Sequence record: NC_019407.1 | Reading direction: 5' to 3' (one strand) | Length of the DNA: 64,000 nucleotides | Part shown: positions 35,572 to 41,538 of the stretch, piece by piece | How the letters are laid out: the number at the start of each line of letters is the position of its first letter | How positions within the stretch are numbered: the first letter of the stretch is position 1 | Made by a program: the position numbers and the translations under genes | The notes under the pieces: model-generated | The model's input: the letters and a program-made list of their open reading frames with translations, nothing else | Told to the model about the DNA's origin: nothing | Databases searched by the model: none

Positions 35572-37275
35572 TTACAGGCGCCAGTGGCGGCCGTTGAAGG
35601 TGATCAGCGCCCGCTTGCCGTTCGGGTACTGCACGCAGTGGGTGTGCGCCCAGGACGAGGGGCCGGTGTTGTAGCCCATGTCCAGCTTCGAGGTTGTGCC
35701 CGTGTTGTAGGCGCTCTCGAAAATGCCGGGCGAGTGGGTGTGGCCGAACGTCACCTTCGGGCCGATCTTGGCGAACTGCTGGATGTTGCCGCGCGAGCCG
35801 TTGGCGCCGTTGTGGCCGTGGTTGGAGTGCTCGACCCCGCCGACGACGCAGGTCTCGTCCTCGCGCAGGAACTTCACGCCGTTGCAGTTCCAGACGTCGA
35901 AGGCGTTGGTCATCACCTCCTCGAAGATCGAGAAGTTCTTCTCGCCGGTCCGGATCGAGGCGTAGACCGCCCGCTGACAGGTGAGGAAGAACTCGGCATT
36001 GACCGGGTCGGCGCGGTAGTCGGCCGTCTTCAGCCACTTGTTGAGCGCCAGATCGTGGTTGCTCTCAACCACCGTGACCTTCGAGTCCGGGGCCTGCCGG
36101 CCCAGGATGGTCAGGAACATCGCCACCTCGCGCAGTTCCTGCTCGACGCTTTCGGAGCCCTTGACATAGAGCCGGAAGCGATCGTGCGGATCGGCGATGT
36201 TGTGGTGGTTGCGCGCCCGGAAGTCGGAGACGTCGTGGACGAAGATGTGCTCGGGCCGCAGGACGTCGATCATCGACGGCGTCGCCACGCTGCCCCACAC
36301 CCGGCTCCCGTCGGCCGAGCGCTGCTCGGTCGGGAAGAAGCCGAAAGTGGCGGCCGAGACCTCGGGATCGATCTGCGCCACGTGGACGTCGCCGGGCGTC
36401 AGGCAGGCCACGCGATGGCCCTCGGTGACCACGCCGTCCTTGACGAAGACGTCCAGGTCGTAGAACGAGCCGTCGGTATCGCCCAGCAGGTGGCGACAGA
36501 AGAACTTGCCGTCCTCGTCGACCTCGACCAGCACCGCGCCCAACTGGTGGTGGAAGCTGGCCTTGATCCCCGCCTTCTTGGGGACGTAGTTCGGCTTGGT
36601 GACCGCGCCCGTCGTCATGATCTGCTTGGACGGGGTGTGCTTCATCGTCGGAACGCTGACGAGTTGCACCTTGGCGTGGGGGAAGATGCCCCAGCGCTCG
36701 CGGGTGTAGGAGTGGAAGCCCGACAGCGGGTTCTCGGCCGTGGGGAGGGTGTTCATCTCGCCGCAGAAGTCGATCCGGTCGGCGATCCGCACGCGCTCGG
36801 CGACGAGGTATTCCATCACCCGCTTGTGGAAGAACGCCGCGTGCTTGGCGTGGTCCTCGAACAGGCGCTTGGAGTAGGTGAAGCCGGCGATCATGATCTC
36901 GCACGGCGCGTCCCGGCGCAGGTGCTCGGCATAGGCCTCCAGATTGTCGACGAACTCCTCGTGGATGTGCGTCGAGTCCTGGGCCGAGGACAGGATGAAC
37001 CGCCGGCGCCCGGTGGTCTCATCCACCGTCACGGTCCGGGCGGCGGGCGCCGGCCGGTGCGACAGCGGGTCCTTGCGCATCGAGTAGAGGCGGTTCTGGA
37101 GCGTCGTGCGCTTGACGCTGTACTTGCGCGAGAACGCCCGCTGGCCGCCGGCCTTCTTGACCATCGCGTTCAGTTCTTCCGGCGACACCGAATAGATGTC
37201 GAACGGACCCTCGGCCGGCAAGGCGGTCTTGGGCTTCTTGCCCGCCTTGGAAGCGTGTTCGAACTCAGCCGGCAT
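35572..37275 (-). CDS. Calcineurin-like metallophosphoesterase with N-terminal HTH-like region
   Basis: GDVH, HDVSD, SNHD, HGH and GHTH metal-binding motifs in order. Confidence 0.75.
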   Translation of the reverse strand: MPAEFEHASKAGKKPKTALPAEGPFDIYSVSPEELNAMVKKAGGQRAFSRKYSVKRTTLQNRLYSMRKDPLSHRPAPAARTVTVDETTGRRRFILSSAQDSTHIHEEFVDNLEAYAEHLRRDAPCEIMIAGFTYSKRLFEDHAKHAAFFHKRVMEYLVAERVRIADRIDFCGEMNTLPTAENPLSGFHSYTRERWGIFPHAKVQLVSVPTMKHTPSKQIMTTGAVTKPNYVPKKAGIKASFHHQLGAVLVEVDEDGKFFCRHLLGDTDGSFYDLDVFVKDGVVTEGHRVACLTPGDVHVAQIDPEVSAATFGFFPTEQRSADGSRVWGSVATPSMIDVLRPEHIFVHDVSDFRARNHHNIADPHDRFRLYVKGSESVEQELREVAMFLTILGRQAPDSKVTVVESNHDLALNKWLKTADYRADPVNAEFFLTCQRAVYASIRTGEKNFSIFEEVMTNAFDVWNCNGVKFLREDETCVVGGVEHSNHGHNGANGSRGNIQQFAKIGPKVTFGHTHSPGIFESAYNTGTTSKLDMGYNTGPSSWAHTHCVQYPNGKRALITFNGRHWRL

Positions 37276-37966
37276 AGAGAAGCTCCGGTTTGGCGCTGAC
37301 CGGCTTGGACCAATCCCAGACGTACCAAGCATAGGCGAAGCGCGGGGCGCCCTTGGTGCCGGCGATCCAGCGGGGGCGGTGACGAAGGGTGACCTTCGCG
37401 GTGAAGGCGGGGTGATCGAACAGGTCCGCGCGCGAGCGCGCCGCGTCCCATTCGTGGCGGCAGAGGAAGGCCACGAGGCCCTGGTCGGCCTCCATCAGGT
37501 CCAGCGCGTGGCGCGCGGCGCGCTCGGCGTCCTTGCCGTAGGGCGGGTTGGTGATGATCGCGTCCGGGCGCGGCGGCAGCGGCGTGTTCTTGCGCTCCTC
37601 GCCTTTCTCGTCGACAACCGTCTCGGGGCGGGCCTTCAGCGCGCCCAGGCGGTCGAGGTCGGCCGGTGTCAGCTTGAAGAAGTCCTCGACCGCGTCGACC
37701 TCGAAGCCCTCGTAGCGGTGGATGTCCGTGGCGAGGACCTCCTGCACGAAGGGCTTGAGCGGCGTGGCGATGGCGCCGTTGCCGGCGAAGGGCTCCCAGG
37801 CGAAGAACGGGGCGAAGTCGTCGCCCAGGGCCTCGATCAGGGCGTCGAAGGCCGGCCGAGGAGTCGGGTAAAAGTCCAGCGGGGTCCTGGCATATCCGGA
37901 GGCGCCCAGCATGGAGGGGTCTTTGCGACCAGCATCGGAGAGAGACATGGTCGTGAGGGATGTCAT
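37265..37966 (-). CDS. Amino (N6-adenine/N4-cytosine) DNA methyltransferase-like protein
   Basis: DFYPTP, WEPFAGNG and ITNPPY motifs. Confidence 0.85.
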   Translation of the reverse strand: MTSLTTMSLSDAGRKDPSMLGASGYARTPLDFYPTPRPAFDALIEALGDDFAPFFAWEPFAGNGAIATPLKPFVQEVLATDIHRYEGFEVDAVEDFFKLTPADLDRLGALKARPETVVDEKGEERKNTPLPPRPDAIITNPPYGKDAERAARHALDLMEADQGLVAFLCRHEWDAARSRADLFDHPAFTAKVTLRHRPRWIAGTKGAPRFAYAWYVWDWSKPVSAKPELLYAG

Positions 37967-37980
37967 GGTTAACGAAGGGT

Positions 37981-37995
37981 GTCAAGATTCACGAC
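37981..37995 (-). promoter_or_regulatory. GTCGTGAATCTTGAC element
   Basis: Exact copy, back-to-back with the ncRNA promoter. Confidence 0.75.
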
Positions 37996-37996
37996 A

Positions 37997-38024
37997 TTGA
38001 CTGTCGTGAGCCACCACGCTAGAC
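37997..38024 (+). promoter_or_regulatory. Caulobacter sigma73-type promoter
   Basis: TTGACT-15 nt-GCTAGAC. Confidence 0.75.
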
Positions 38025-38026
38025 AG

Positions 38027-38690
38027 GGGGCTACGGGCCGTCCTCCTGCGTTAGCCCCGCCGCCGCGCCTTCCAGGCGGCGAAGGTCGGGACGGAGCCGA
38101 AGGCGAGCCGGCCGAGGCAGCGGTTGGTGAGCAAAAGGAGAACCCGGCGAGCGGCGGAAGGCGAGTTCCTCGCCCTCGAACTCGGAAAGCACGTGGTGAT
38201 GCCGGAACCACCGCGCTCGCGCGGACGTCTGGACGTTGCTAGGCGTAAGGCTGGCCTGCCGAGAAATGGAAACGGCCGGGGCGGACGGGACTTGATCTCG
38301 TCCGCCTTTCCGCCTAAGCTTCCCTCATTGCAGGCGCAGCACCGCCCCTTGCTAACGGCCCCGAGGGGTACGCGGGGGCTATGAAGCCTTGCCTGGGCAG
38401 GACTGCCACTGAACCAGGAACGCCCTGGGCCGCGTATCGCCCATGACGCGAACGCCGGCCGAGAACAGGCGACTAGGCGTGACGGCGACCAGAGGTCGCA
38501 CGATATTCCAAGCTCGGTAGAGCGATCGGCGGGCCGGGGCGCGAGCCTCGTTTCGAGAGCCAGGGCAACCCGTCATAGGTCCTGGTCGGGCGACGAGGCA
38601 GCAAGTCCTGCGAACGGAGCCTCTGAGGCGGCGTCACCAAGATGCAGCAGACGCAAAAAGGCCCCGATCTTGCGATCGGGGCCTTTTCAT
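38027..38690 (+). ncRNA. Candidate ~660-nt large structured ncRNA (unassigned)
   Basis: Own promoter and terminator, no credible ORF, many local stems plus a long-range GGCGGAA/TTCCGCC pairing. Confidence 0.65.
38655..38687. terminator. Bidirectional intrinsic terminator
   Basis: AAAAAGGCCCCGATC-TTGC-GATCGGGGCCTTTT. Confidence 0.92.
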
Positions 38691-38692
38691 GT

Positions 38693-38781
38693 TGGAGCTT
38701 CGGGAGGGACTCGAACCCTCATAGGTGTTCCCACCAGCAGAGATTTGCAATCCCGCGCCTAACCTCTCAGTCCACCGAAGC
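38693..38781 (-). tRNA. tRNA-Cys(GCA) with long variable arm
   Basis: GCTTCGG/CCGAAGC acceptor, U73, encoded CCA, loop TT-GCA-AA, T arm GAGGG-TTCGAGT-CCCTC, extra GGTG-GGAA-CACC stem. Confidence 0.9.
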
Positions 38782-38784
38782 ACA

Positions 38785-38965
38785 AAAGGACCTCGACGCC
38801 CGAAGGCCCGAGGTCCGATCCGTAACCAGGGGAGGGCCGTAGCTGTCCCCTGACCCTGAACGACAGGTGGCGGGCTTGGTCGTCATCCCGTCAGGCTCGC
38901 GGCGCCGCTCGCCTGAACCGCCGATATGCCACGAGGGCAGTGATCCGCAGGTCCCCATAAATAGC
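38785..38965 (-). ncRNA. Candidate ~180-nt structured RNA between the GOLLD-like terminator and tRNA-Cys
   Basis: Non-coding; CAGGC/GCCTG, GTGGC/GCCAC and CAGGGG/CCCCTG stems; ends in a U-tailed hairpin. Confidence 0.4.
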
Positions 38966-39000
38966 AAAAAGGCCACGATCCGCGAGGACCGTGGCCTTTT
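38966..39000. terminator. Intrinsic terminator
   Basis: AAAAAGGCCACG...CGTGGCCTTTT. Confidence 0.88.
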
Positions 39001-39004
39001 CGTT

Positions 39005-39878
39005 TTCCGATGGGCTGAGACTACACCCATCAGCAATCCCGCTTCGAGGATTATTCCCCAGGTGCGACCCCAGGTATTCCCTCGACGTCCACCAGACCCC
39101 TTGCGGTAGTCCAGTCCGAGATCATCGCCGCCGTTCTTGCGCACCCCGAAGGGATTGCGGGTCTGGCGTTTGACCCATCATGGCGAACTACTCGACAGTT
39201 CCTTCCCCGCTGGGCTTGCGACCCACTCACCGGCGCTAACCGGCTGACGAAGCTCTTCCTATCGACACCTCGCGGGCTTGCGACCCTTGAGATGACTCCG
39301 TTACCCGAAGGCCGGAGCATTTGGCGACTTACGTCCGCCACTGGACCAGTCTTTGCGTTTTTCATCGAAGCGGGGATTGAACCCGCGACCGACAGCTTAA
39401 GAGGCTGTTGCACTACCACTGTGCTATTCGCAAACCCACCAAGACGTGCTGGTCCAGTTGTTCCCAGAGCTTTTGACCCCAGAAATGCAACACGCCTCAT
39501 ATCTTTCGCCTTGCGGGCTACTCGACTGCTCTTCAGGACCCCGTCTCCCCCAACCTTTCGGCCAGGATGCCCAGCACCCCTCGAACTGAAGCAAAGCTCT
39601 TCACCGCGAAGTGTCGAACCCTGCAACCCAAACGGTTATCCGTACTCCCTAGACGCGCTTGCACGGGATAGTCCGCTTGCGACGGACTGGCGGTTAAAGC
39701 CTCGGAGTTACCCCGGCCCCGCCTTGTCTCCCACGGTCTTCAGGTCTATCCCCTTTTGCAAGAGGCGGCCAGCTTCCCAGCCCGGACCCGTCGGCTTCCT
39801 CTGTCCTCTTGCGAGGTCGGGCGGCCTATGGGAGACCGTCCCTGTCACCCCGTCGCCGGGGCTTTCGTCAGAAGCGAC
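39005..39878 (-). ncRNA. GOLLD-like giant structured RNA (~870 nt)
   Basis: Promoter and terminator bounded; at least 8 GNRA and 2 UUCG hairpins; GTCGAGTAG twice, one in a loop-E-like AGUA/GAA context; internal tRNA module; next to phage tRNAs. Family call is from recalled GOLLD features, not a search. Confidence 0.72.
39362..39433 (-). tRNA. tRNA-Lys(CTT)-like module embedded in the GOLLD-like RNA; degenerate acceptor stem, no CCA
   Basis: D arm GCAC/GTGC, ACAGC-CTCTTAA-GCTGT, GCGGG-TTCAATC-CCCGC; only about 4-5 acceptor pairs. Confidence 0.8.
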
Positions 39879-39884
39879 GATGAC

Positions 39885-39913
39885 GTTCTAGCGACAGCCC
39901 ACGTCGTCGTCAA
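39885..39913 (-). promoter_or_regulatory. Sigma73-type promoter of the GOLLD-like RNA
   Basis: TTGACG-15 nt-GCTAGAAC. Confidence 0.82.
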
Positions 39914-39969
39914 CGACTTTTTCCGTCTCGATGTCGAATTTTTTCGACAGTCGTGGATGACGACAGTGC

Positions 39970-39998
39970 TTGACATTCTCGTAAGCCCATGCTAGGTG
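39970..39998 (+). promoter_or_regulatory. Sigma73-type promoter of the tmRNA/tRNA unit (divergent)
   Basis: TTGACA-15 nt-GCTAGGT. Confidence 0.72.
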
Positions 39999-40003
39999 TC
40001 GGA

Positions 40004-40375
40004 AATCGTTGTAATTCGGACAACGGAACTGGCGGCAAGACAGGGGTGCGAATCCCCTCGCCTCCACCATCGACGCCCGGCGCTGGGAGTACGCGACTCC
40101 TGGGCAGGGTGCGTTACCCTGGCGGGCTGCGGCCCGAGCCAAGGGGTAGCCGGGCGTCGTTGATGGGGGCGACTAGCTTTCGATTGGCGCTCGGGACTGA
40201 AAGACGCAACGGTGGGTGACCTCCACATCGGCTTGCCGGTGATCGGGTCAGGCAACAGTAAATGTCGCCGACAATGACAACGACGTCGTGGCTTTCGCCT
40301 CGGCTCGTGAAGCCATCGCCGCCTAATAAGCGGTAGAGGAGCCCGCCGGGAGCTTGGCAACAGAATCCCGGCAAC
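40004..40375 (+). ncRNA. ssrA: Two-piece (circularly permuted) alphaproteobacterial-type tmRNA
   Basis: Acceptor piece ends GAC-AGGGG-TGCGAAT-CCCCT-CGCCTCC-A-CCA (40069). Intervening segment closed by CGACGCCCGGC/GCCGGGCGTCG. Coding piece starts GGGGGCG (40165), giving G3:U70. Tag 40267-40326 reads ADNDNDVVAFASAREAIAA with tandem TAA. Confidence 0.93.
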
Positions 40376-40507
40376 CCCCTTTCGCAGGCGGGAACACCAA
40401 CAGGCGATCTGTCGGGCGACCGATTTCCGATCCGTGTTCCCGTCTTCGAAAGGTGGTCGGGCCTACCCTCTTGGTGTGCTATCCAAGGGTCTGGCCACTT
40501 TACAGAA

Positions 40508-40586
40508 CGCGGGGTAGAGGAGTCCGGTTGTCCTCGTCTGGCTCATAACCAGGAGATCGTGGGTTCAAATCCCACTCCCGCTCCCA
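40508..40586 (+). tRNA. tRNA-Met(CAT), initiator-like
   Basis: CGCGGGG 5' end with C1:U72 mismatch, CT-CAT-AA loop, GTGGG-TTCAAAT-CCCAC, CCA encoded. Confidence 0.9.
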
Positions 40587-40588
40587 AT

Positions 40589-40985
40589 GCGAACGCCGGC
40601 TGTTGAGAACGACGGCGTGACAAGCTCGGAGAGAACGAGCACTCCAGTCCGGGGTATGAGGCCGGACTAGCGGACGCCGTAGCGATTGCAGGCGTGACAC
40701 CCGGAGATAGCGGGACCGGCTTTCCGAGCCGCATGCTCGGCGCGTAAGACCGCAGGCCTCGGCCATCGGGCTGTGTCAGGGGATGAGGCTAGTCCTCGGC
40801 TAACCACCTAGCGGTGAAGCTAGGGCATGCGGTTCGGAAAGCCGGTTCGCACCTTCCGCGCGGACCTCGACGAGAGGAAAAGCGCCAGGACCACGGTCCT
40901 GAGATTCGACGGCTGCATGCAGCCTCCTGATCTGACTACGGTTCGACGGGACGAGCGGTGAAAGCCCGTGTCGACCGACTGGTGG
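40589..40985 (+). ncRNA. Array of about 12 short hairpins between two tRNAs (candidate sRNA)
   Basis: ACGCC/GGCGT twice, GCTCG/CGAGC, AGTCCGG/CCGGACT, CCGAGC/GCTCGG, CCTAGC/GCTAGG, AGGACC/GGTCCT and others; no credible ORF. Confidence 0.5.
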
Positions 40986-40995
40986 GTGAGATTTT

Positions 40996-41080
40996 GGTAC
41001 GGTGGCTCGACAGGTAAGGCATCGGCCTCATAAGCCGAGGGTTCGTCCCAATCCTGGTTCAAATCCAGGTCGTACCTCCA
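40996..41080 (+). tRNA. tRNA with CAT anticodon (Met or Ile2) and long variable arm
   Basis: GGTACGG/TCGTACC acceptor, U73, CCA, TCGGC-CTCATAA-GCCGA, extra GGG-TTCGT-CCC arm, CCTGG-TTCAAAT-CCAGG. Confidence 0.88.
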
Positions 41081-41154
41081 AATCGACGCTTGACCCCAGG
41101 CCGCAGGCTGCTAAGCTTCCCCGGTCGGGATCGTCCCGCGTCCTTTCCAAGGTC

Positions 41155-41184
41155 AAGCCCCCGGAGCCTCGCTTCGGGGGCTTT
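41155..41184. terminator. Intrinsic terminator ending the tmRNA/tRNA unit
   Basis: AAGCCCC-CGGAGC...GCTTCG-GGGCTTTT. Confidence 0.8.
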
Positions 41185-41538
41185 TCAGTTCTTGACCACC
41201 CGCAGGCGCCGGGCCTCGCTGGCGCGCTCCTCCGCCGCCACGCGCGAGACGTCTTGCAGGTGCGCCTTGGCGATCAGGTCGGGTGCGCCCACGGCCCGGA
41301 AGGGCACCTTGACGGAGAGGTCGACATAGCGCCGCAAGAGCGGCTCGAATTCCAGACCCCGCGCCTGGGCGATCCGCGACAATGCGCCGGCGACGATCGC
41401 CACGACCAGGACGTTGGTCGGGGTCTCCTTGGTCAGGGTCCAGATGCCCGGTATCGATTGTCCAGGATGGAGTTCCTGCCGCGACACGTCATCGGCGGCG
41501 GCGCGGAAGAGGTTCTCGTAAGGGACGTTTTCGAGCAT
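41185..41538 (-). CDS. Hypothetical protein
   Basis: High GC3 from ATG 41538; the upstream part of the listed ORF is not gene-like. Confidence 0.65.
   Translation of the reverse strand: MLENVPYENLFRAAADDVSRQELHPGQSIPGIWTLTKETPTNVLVVAIVAGALSRIAQARGLEFEPLLRRYVDLSVKVPFRAVGAPDLIAKAHLQDVSRVAAEERASEARRLRVVKN

Follow-up and report, generated by a model that had tools for sequence, protein, structure and literature searches.

The stretch of DNA analysed here, called the window, comprises 64,000 nucleotides (nt) of record NC_019407.1, the genome of Caulobacter virus Magneto (Shapirovirus, Dolichocephalovirinae); a window coordinate is the GenBank JX100812 coordinate minus 62,000. Between a DNA methylase gene (37265-37966, - strand) and a tRNA-Cys gene (38693-38781, - strand) lies an interval, 38027-38690, which opens an island of stable RNAs. 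The island also includes a GOLLD RNA, a two-piece transfer-messenger RNA (tmRNA) and, both on the + strand, tRNA-fMet and tRNA-Met. GenBank annotates a hypothetical protein, gp126 (38051-38563, - strand), across the interval. We find that the giant Caulobacter phages (phiCbK group) have here a conserved gene for a non-coding RNA, which has been mis-annotated as a protein. The RNA belongs to a previously undescribed, phage-specific family of modular RNAs with a new pseudoknot-hairpin motif, here called the core, at the boundaries of the stable-RNA island. The features concerned are as follows.

37967..38009, no strand: control block, 43 nt between methylase start and RNA start, identical in all eight aligned phages
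37997..38025, + strand: predicted promoter, TTGACT, 15 nt, GCTAGACA, largely resembling the Caulobacter sigma-73 type
38027..38690, + strand: predicted primary transcript, a modular RNA of about 660 nt with predicted ends (covariation, no coding signal, excess of G.U pairs)
38027..38242, + strand: 5' domain, unit 1, with helices 4 to 11, several with compensatory changes
38245..38310, + strand: diverged core, module 2, with GUAAGGCUG, P1', GG and the long hairpin GCGGACG..CGUCCGC (helix 13)
38318..38441, + strand: variable domain, unit 3, with the invariant helix GCAGCACC 38336-38343 / GGACUGC 38400-38406; helix P0 abuts the core
38442..38501, + strand: canonical core (82 bits, E=6e-21 with covariance model R1)
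38504..38622, + strand: variable domain, unit 4, with helices 24 to 28
38623..38687, + strand: terminal core, with CUGAGGCG, P1'', AAAAA, P2 in the form of the terminator hairpin (38660-38683), and UUUU
38655..38687, no strand: predicted bidirectional intrinsic terminator, common to the convergent tRNA-Cys (-)
40583..40643, + strand: core variant outside the interval (R1 E=0.0016), starting directly after the CCA of tRNA-fMet
40662..40716, + strand: weaker core variant (E=0.17) in the tRNA-fMet/tRNA-Met spacer

A conserved non-coding RNA on the + strand

Shapirovirus (90-100% identity), Poindextervirus Rogue and BL10 (about 69%) and phage BL57 have full-length homologues of the RNA. The alignment of eight phages, which represent only about four independent lineages, contains invariant islands between variable stems. 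Its RNAalifold consensus has 168 pairs. Changes on both sides are seen in 44 of these, compared with 7-11 in slid controls, and standard pairs occupy 92.8% of cells, compared with 37-45% when the partners are slid by 1-3 columns. None of 500 shuffles attains the observed pairing values. The 664-nt fold has a minimum free energy of -327.9 kcal/mol (z -2.5, 20 shuffles). A preliminary description, made from the DNA letters of the interval, had proposed a structured RNA and had named as contrary evidence homologues conserved as a reading frame rather than by compensatory pairs. Compensatory pairs are what the eight phages provide, and a protein reading frame is not conserved among them.

The complementary segments of all the stems listed in the preliminary description are present. 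GCCGCC/GGCGGC, GGCGGACG/CGTCCGCC, GCGACC/GGTCGC and GCTC..GAGC lie in helices with compensatory changes, and GTGGT/ACCAC is moderately supported. Conservation of GGGGCTA/TAGCCCC is limited to Shapirovirus, and CGAGTTC/GAACTCG (66% paired, 48/500 shuffles) is no better than shuffles; its place is taken by a local hairpin, GGCGAG/CUCGCC, with covariation to GGCGUC/GACGCC. In Rogue and BL10 the two segments of the proposed long-range pairing GGCGGAA/TTCCGCC are conserved in sequence, without covariation to support it. The long-range helices as a group are nearly devoid of it (none among the 8 pairs of helix 12 and one each in helices 2 and 3).

If the feature belonged to the - strand, it would be the gp126 protein or else an RNA of the methylase operon, either a long 5' leader or an antisense RNA. 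GenBank indeed has coding sequences here in several phages, with counterparts of gp126 in Karma, Rogue, phiCbK, Ccr10, BL64 and RBC8, and phiCbK and Karma possess a stop-free - strand frame of 219-221 codons. Such a frame spans the whole RNA in RBC57 as well; its estimated chance at such GC is a few per cent. The counterparts in BL64 and RBC8 carry the GenBank name 'DNA transfer protein'. These coding sequences nevertheless look spurious, being R/P/A-rich and having a CTG start. The gp126 frame contains no ATG, GTG or TTG start and is not conserved: its counterparts vary in length and frame, with interruptions and shifts in Rogue, BL10 and BL57. The 'proteins' of Magneto and Rogue have only 10 residues in common, and these overlie the conserved RNA core. 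No open reading frame (ORF) over the RNA matches a Pfam family, and substitutions between relatives show no three-base periodicity (six comparisons, P 0.2-0.9), so that gp126 also lacks the third-position bias of a protein gene. The claim that the interval is non-coding is thereby upheld.

Pairs predicted on both strands do not separate the strands when tested symmetrically (11 G.U versus 8 A.C). The strand was assessed instead on helices whose register is set by Watson-Crick covariation. On the + strand these contain 44 G.U and 9 A.C cells (P=1e-6). The closing pairs of the core hairpins are G.U on the + strand, and a hairpin loop that alternates between GCGA and GAAA is of the GNRA type on this strand only. 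The conserved promoter is also on the + strand, and in the Colossus-type phages described below every core is co-oriented with the + strand tRNAs and ORFs downstream of it. A - strand origin of the feature is extremely unlikely.

The ends of the transcript are placed at 38027 and 38690 because of the positions of promoter and terminator. Both of these, a TTGACT-15-GCTAGAC promoter and a strong terminator at 38655-38687, had been pointed out previously and are indeed in the sequence, the first with a conserved -35 element and the second as a very stable hairpin. TTGACT occupies 37997-38002 and GCTAGAC(A), 15 bases further on, 38018-38025. Caulobacter sigma-73 promoters have the consensus TTGACgS-N10-14-GCTANAWC. 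The sequence TTGACTG-N14-GCTAGACA matches it at six of the seven -35 positions and throughout the GCTANA of the -10 element; the last two -10 positions are CA, a mismatch to WC. Across the eight phages the -35 element is invariant and the -10 element keeps G-Y-T-A-N-A. In the control block, a perfect 8-base-pair (bp) inverted repeat (TCACGACA/TGTCGTGA) brackets the -35 TTGAC. The 43 nt of this block are invariant although the eight phages are otherwise only 69% identical, and they are partly retained in Brevundimonas phage Bajun and in an IMG/VR contig, IMGVR_UViG_3300033068_001629 (L017). The block is probably an operator that serves the promoters of the methylase and the RNA, which diverge from each other. 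It also holds a TTAAC, which resembles a CtrA half-site.

The terminator hairpin is AAAAAGGCCCCGATC-TTGC-GATCGGGGCCTTTT, with a 10-bp G+C-rich stem at 38660-38683, a 4-nt loop and a following UUUU, as in intrinsic terminators. It is very stable on both strands (+ strand, -27.8 kcal/mol, z -6.1; - strand, -29.3 kcal/mol, z -7.9), and we therefore predict that it is bidirectional and shared with tRNA-Cys. An E. coli-type scanner calls neither promoter nor terminator at this locus because the -10 element does not resemble TATAAT and the stem takes in the A/T tracts. The same type of scanner calls none of the Caulobacter-type promoters, and promoter-like sites after cores were assessed by an enrichment test for TTGAC instead.

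The RNA cannot be assigned to a known family. With Rfam 15, no match falls in the interval either at gathering thresholds (whole window) or at E<=10 with permissive filters (37800-41200), and full-text literature searches (GOLLD, Caulobacter phage non-coding RNAs, core sequence) returned no description of the RNA or its core. The unassigned status given in the preliminary description, which had recommended a covariance-model scan, is therefore maintained. ARAGORN and the Rfam tRNA and tmRNA models find no tRNA or tmRNA within the interval. The D-arm-like GCTC-GGTA-GAGC was considered as part of a tRNA and rejected, since no cloverleaf follows. A search for antisense targets of the RNA in the 64-kb window gave only matches of 14 nt or less, which is chance level.

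The pseudoknot-hairpin core and its modules

Distant relatives have only about 55-60 nt in common with Magneto (38442-38501), and these are repeated in them. This core consists of a junction (yCUGAsGyGA), a 5-bp stem P1 with its loop, a second junction (GACG) and a hairpin, P2. P1 (ACGCC/GGCGU) is paired in 99% of cells and has three covarying pairs, with compensated variants such as ACGUC/GACGU and AAGCC/GGCUU; it encloses a loop of 17-19 nt that starts with GGCCGAGA. The stem of P2 covaries freely (four covarying pairs) while its loop keeps (C)AGAG(G). In all 23 copies the y of the junction is paired with loop position 2 (C-G 18, G-C 3, G-U 1 and U-G 1) and the adjoining G-C pair is invariant. 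Two junction nucleotides, G and y, thus pair with loop positions 2-3 and form an H-type pseudoknot with P1. An inner hairpin within the P1 loop, GCC/GGC, would compete with the pseudoknot but was discarded (60% versus 100% paired at the informative pair). Sixteen of the 60 columns are invariant and 11 more are conserved at 90% or above. An HDV-like (hepatitis delta virus) fold, a hammerhead core and a k-turn were also tried by hand, and none fits.

Searches with a profile hidden Markov model (nhmmer) and the covariance model R1 yield 23 canonical copies, scoring 47-83 bits, and about 10 further copies that are weaker. The nhmmer search, which the preliminary description had suggested, thus finds core copies in Caulobacter and Brevundimonas phages and in one IMG/VR contig. 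All copies are on the strand of the RNA island, with none convincing elsewhere in the 64-kb window. The contig, L017, was the one new sequence found with a strict pattern scan of viral sequences. Looser scans (CGCCGGCCRARA-N8-13-GGCGTGA in metagenomes and genomes and GAACGCC-N14-22-GGCGTGACG in viral sequences) returned 240 and 119 loci, respectively, all chance matches after filtering. These scans are uninformative because the patterns are too loose for high-GC data.

In Magneto, core starts are about 180-200 nt apart (38245, 38442 and 38623), and the helix P0, which closes a variable domain, directly adjoins each core at its 5' side. In Colossus and CcrPW the spacing is 224-256 nt, with unrelated sequence between the cores. 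The canonical core of Magneto has the junction UGACGCGA (38444-38451), P1 formed by ACGCC (38452-56) and GGCGU (38476-80) around the loop GGCCGAGAACAGGCGACUA, the pseudoknot pairs C38449-G38458 and G38448-C38459, the junction GACG (38481-84) and P2, GCGACC-AGA-GGUCGC (38485-99). The diverged core of module 2 has a P1' of GGCC (38253-56) and GGCC (38274-77) around U-GCCGAGAAAUGGAAAC. P1' covaries by eye (AGGCC/GGCCU in Rogue, GGACU/GGUCC in BL10 and CGCCC/GGGCG in BL57), and with R1 this core scores E=0.002 in Rogue and E=0.26 in BL57, with a partial match only (E=4.1) in Magneto. In the terminal core, P1'' (GCGUC 38631-35 / GACGC 38650-54) surrounds ACCAAGAUGCAGCA. Its pseudoknot pair covaries, being G-C in Rogue and C-G in BL57, and is C.A in Shapirovirus. 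The same layout ends the arrays of Rogue, BL57, Gurke (with ACGUC/GACGU), Bajun and Kabachok.

The domains between the cores also contain conserved elements. Unit 1 has hairpins at 38058-38079 and 38108-38127, the latter with an invariant CG-AGGCAG-CG; CGAGGCAGCG is likewise invariant in the eight phages, and a weak core-like arrangement is possible in this domain. The helix GCAGCACY/GGACUGC of unit 3 is found in six lineages (Shapirovirus, Poindextervirus, BL57, CcrPW, L017 and Kabachok). Unit 4 includes GCUC-GGUA-GAGC, a GNRA hairpin, GGGGC-GCGA-GCCUC (38536-38549), whose loop changes from GCGA to GAAA with compensating changes in the stem, and a helix, GCCAGG..CCUGGU.

The anatomy of the core raises the question of whether it might be a new small self-cleaving ribozyme or ligand-sensing aptamer, which would cleave or regulate polycistronic transcripts of stable RNAs where modules meet. 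A compact pseudoknot with variable, covarying stems and so many invariant or nearly invariant positions is a pattern typical of such RNAs. Many copies lie at boundaries beside tRNAs and, in the terminal unit, P2 is itself a terminator, like an expression platform. However, the U-tract is absent from most P2 hairpins and no conserved cleavage-site dinucleotide is evident. Rfam at E<=10 gave no match, ribozymes and riboswitches included, for three tandem Colossus cores (601-nt search space), and none of its ribozyme or riboswitch models overlaps the Magneto core. We consider this explanation improbable. Equally doubtful is its bolder form, in which the core would be a new catalytic or ligand-binding pseudoknot class releasing tRNAs, small mRNAs and RNAs of about 200 nt, and the modules a new family of phage effector RNAs.

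Cores in related phages and relation to known elements

The distant relatives that carry cores are Colossus, CcrPW, L017 and the Brevundimonas phages Gurke, Kikimora, Kabachok, Domovoi and Bajun. Copy numbers are as follows.

Colossus: three canonical cores and one weaker variant
CcrPW: four canonical cores and one weaker variant
L017: seven canonical cores and at least one weaker variant
Kabachok and Domovoi: three canonical cores and a terminal core
Gurke: two canonical cores (one degenerate) and a terminal core
Bajun: one canonical core and a terminal core
Magneto, Rogue and BL57 types: one canonical core and diverged copies

In Bertelyvirus CcrSC and in Sphingobium phage Lacusarx, searching up to 6 kb from the methylase gene revealed no core. 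CcrSC has, beside the methylase and where the other genera carry the RNA island, a gene for a 3'-phosphatase/5'-polynucleotide kinase, an RNA-repair enzyme (locus L262, 4833-5888).

Cores lie at several kinds of boundary. They occur directly 5' of tRNA-Cys (Colossus, CcrPW and L017) and of tRNA-Met (L017), and directly 3' of the CCA of tRNA-fMet (Magneto 40583-40643 and BL10). Others are followed by the Shine-Dalgarno sequence and ATG of small ORFs (L017 1424 and 1865; CcrPW gp171) and, in terminal units, by a U-tract. Copies equivalent to those in the tRNA-fMet/tRNA-Met spacer of Magneto are seen in BL10, Rogue, Colossus and CcrPW. The modules themselves appear in related phages as separate units of about 190-270 nt with their own promoter-like site, or fused to tRNAs or ORFs. 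For example, the orthologues of unit 3 in CcrPW and L017 have their own promoter-like site and lie just 5' of tRNA-Cys, while that of Kabachok is first in the array.

Of 22 cores, eight have a TTGAC in the next 10 nt, with a -10-like hexamer 17 nt beyond it (P=2.5e-6). In addition, CcrPW (L009 1631-2562) differs from Colossus (L010 2754-2816) by gp171 and one extra RNA unit, and this indel ends exactly at two cores; cores therefore appear as recombination joints for the gain and loss of modules. Both observations recall the promoter-early stem-loops (PeSLs) of T4-type phages. PeSLs are repeats of about 50-60 nt that combine a stem-loop with a host-type promoter and flank exchangeable modules. 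The core is likewise repeated, partly linked to promoters and found at indel ends. It could accordingly be imagined as a DNA-level repeat, that is, a mobile regulatory or recombination cassette formed by core and promoter, in which RNA structure amounts only to a terminator-like hairpin. Yet P1 and the pseudoknot pair covary and G.U pairs are found on one strand only, which speaks for selection at the RNA level; no promoter follows many of the cores, and the variable domains are structured RNA as well. PeSLs, moreover, flank protein ORFs and are seen as DNA or promoter elements, whereas here RNA pairing is selected and the cargo is mostly non-coding. An explanation at the DNA level is very unlikely.

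The preliminary description had compared the RNA with ROOL and OLE, and the size, phage origin and location in a tRNA island beside GOLLD do agree with what is described for GOLLD and ROOL. The RNA might then be a single globular, 'ornate' molecule of about 660 nt, possibly an RNA-only oligomer, with the cores serving as tertiary-structure modules. In Magneto-type phages one promoter, one terminator and a rich structure would suit this. Three observations make it less likely. The long-range helices, as noted above, hardly covary; through gain and loss of modules the RNA is as short as about 475 nt in Bajun and exceeds 1.6 kb in CcrPW; and the units of CcrPW, L017, Colossus, Kabachok and Gurke have their own promoter-like sites, with ORFs between them. 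Visual inspection of the hairpin loops also revealed no covarying palindromes. The comparison thus does not hold for architecture, which is one of tandem modules with a repeated core, and we regard a single globular RNA as unlikely.

The covariance models of the three families are all silent on the interval. The ROOL model (RF03087) gives no match at E<=10 in 37800-41200 or window-wide at its gathering threshold. The two RNAs are alike in size range, phage or prophage origin, proximity to tRNA genes and the presence of pseudoknots, and the function of both is unknown, but the RNA described here comes from another host clade (phages of high-GC Alphaproteobacteria) and shows no sign of a closed global fold or of oligomerisation. 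OLE RNAs are characterised by associated oapA/oapB/oapC genes and a Firmicutes host. Here the OLE covariance model (RF01071) finds no match, the host is Caulobacter and the neighbours are a methylase and a tRNA. With GOLLD (RF02032) the RNA shares phage origin, location in a tRNA island with tRNAs beside or inside it, a length of several hundred nt, rich structure and a combination of conserved and variable parts. However, GOLLD has one conserved 3' domain in place of an array of modules with a repeated 60-nt core, and the present RNA is more widely spread within the subfamily. The GOLLD model is silent on 38027-38690, and its sole match in the window is a true GOLLD RNA 320 nt away on the opposite strand.

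This GOLLD RNA (39012-39498, - strand; 169 bits against a gathering score of 150) is bona fide and lacks annotation in the GenBank record. A tRNA-Lys is embedded in it (39361-39434), and its 5' variable half probably extends to about 39900. GOLLD is also present in BL57 and absent from the loci of Rogue, Colossus, CcrPW, Gurke and L017. The phage-encoded tmRNA of the island (39977-40417, + strand) is of the two-piece (permuted) type with the tag peptide VADNDNDVVAFASAREAIAA. Its position is conserved throughout the subfamily and it, too, is missing from the annotation of the Magneto record. The L017 island includes a run of iteron-like CCGGACA/CTGGACA repeats and a tRNA-like sequence with an apparent insertion and no Rfam call (regions 2120-2400 and 2870-2995).

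Possible function of the core

Type III antitoxins (ToxI, CptI) and the pseudo-ToxI mimics of phages consist of repeated pseudoknot units in one transcript that ends at a terminator, and phages encode such arrays. The present RNA also repeats pseudoknot units in a terminator-ended transcript, and its core, like an antitoxin unit, folds as a pseudoknot, with the junction-to-loop pair present in every canonical copy in four pair types. This likeness suggests a trans-acting decoy or sponge, in which the cores would titrate a host or phage RNA-binding protein or nuclease (for example, a toxin or abortive-infection RNase, RNase E or a translational regulator) in the manner of CsrB/RsmZ or of ToxI-type RNAs and their phage mimics. 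The number of copies (3 to 7 or more per genome), the strict conservation of about 27 positions, two GAGA-type loops and the phage-specific setting, in an island plausibly devoted to host takeover, are all in keeping with such a role. Antitoxin units, by contrast, are 34-47 nt long and directly tandem, whereas 110-190 nt of structured RNA, partly conserved, intervene between one 60-nt core and the next. The sequences are not similar, and no gene for a cognate endoribonuclease, toxN-like or other, is adjacent: no ToxN/AbiE-like gene lies downstream of the array terminator, where the convergent tRNA-Cys or other tRNA and tmRNA genes are found. Positions at tRNA and ORF boundaries and fusion to a terminator are also unexpected for a pure sponge. 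A decoy function is conceivable but rather unlikely.

The boundary positions point to another type of precedent. The RNase III sites of T7 and the tRNA cluster of T4 (with its 'species 1/2' RNAs) provide structured boundary elements that define RNA ends, and stable RNAs beside tRNAs. Cores resemble them in being repeated, structured and located at gene boundaries. T7 sites are long, irregular RNase III duplexes, whereas the core is a short pseudoknot and hairpin with strict sequence conservation, and processing at the cores is only inferred.

We tentatively favour the reading that the locus produces a + strand RNA of tandem modules from a host-type promoter and that the core is a cis-acting punctuation or 3'-end module of the stable-RNA island. 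Punctuation and end protection in cis are favoured because this is the sole role compatible with all the positions at which cores occur. Transcription would start from the sigma-73-like promoter (37997-38025), yield the + strand transcript of about 660 nt and stop at the bidirectional terminator (38655-38687). Each module comprises a lineage-variable helical domain closed by P0 and then the conserved core. The core may mark the ends of RNAs and shield them, acting as a compact obstacle to exonucleases or else being recognised by a processing nuclease. In this way long or overlapping transcripts would give rise to individual domains, tRNAs and small mRNAs that accumulate as discrete stable species. 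The repeated cores might double as joints at which modules are gained or lost by recombination.

Several observations weigh against this interpretation. The distance between P2 and a downstream tRNA varies from 2 to 10 nt, so that cleavage would have no fixed register. Invariant or nearly invariant positions number about 27 of the 60 in the core, which is more than a simple exonuclease block needs and would suit a specific ligand, a specific protein or catalysis. Such strict conservation leaves open the more specific readings of a protein site (for a sponge or a processing factor), a ligand aptamer or a small ribozyme. The variable domains, too, have helices that covary and blocks that are invariant, so that the 'cargo' also has a function, one for which this interpretation does not account. 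Finally, the full-length alignment draws on those four or so lineages, and the strand evidence is biased in part, the structure having been predicted on the + strand.

Phages of the phiCbK type are classic tools for research on the Caulobacter cell cycle, and in their genomes this locus is annotated as hypothetical or as a 'DNA transfer protein'. Both host and phage are genetically tractable. With up to seven copies per genome at the boundaries of RNA genes, the core offers a mutable handle on how giant phages organise, process and deploy their stable-RNA islands, a question that arises for GOLLD and ROOL as well.

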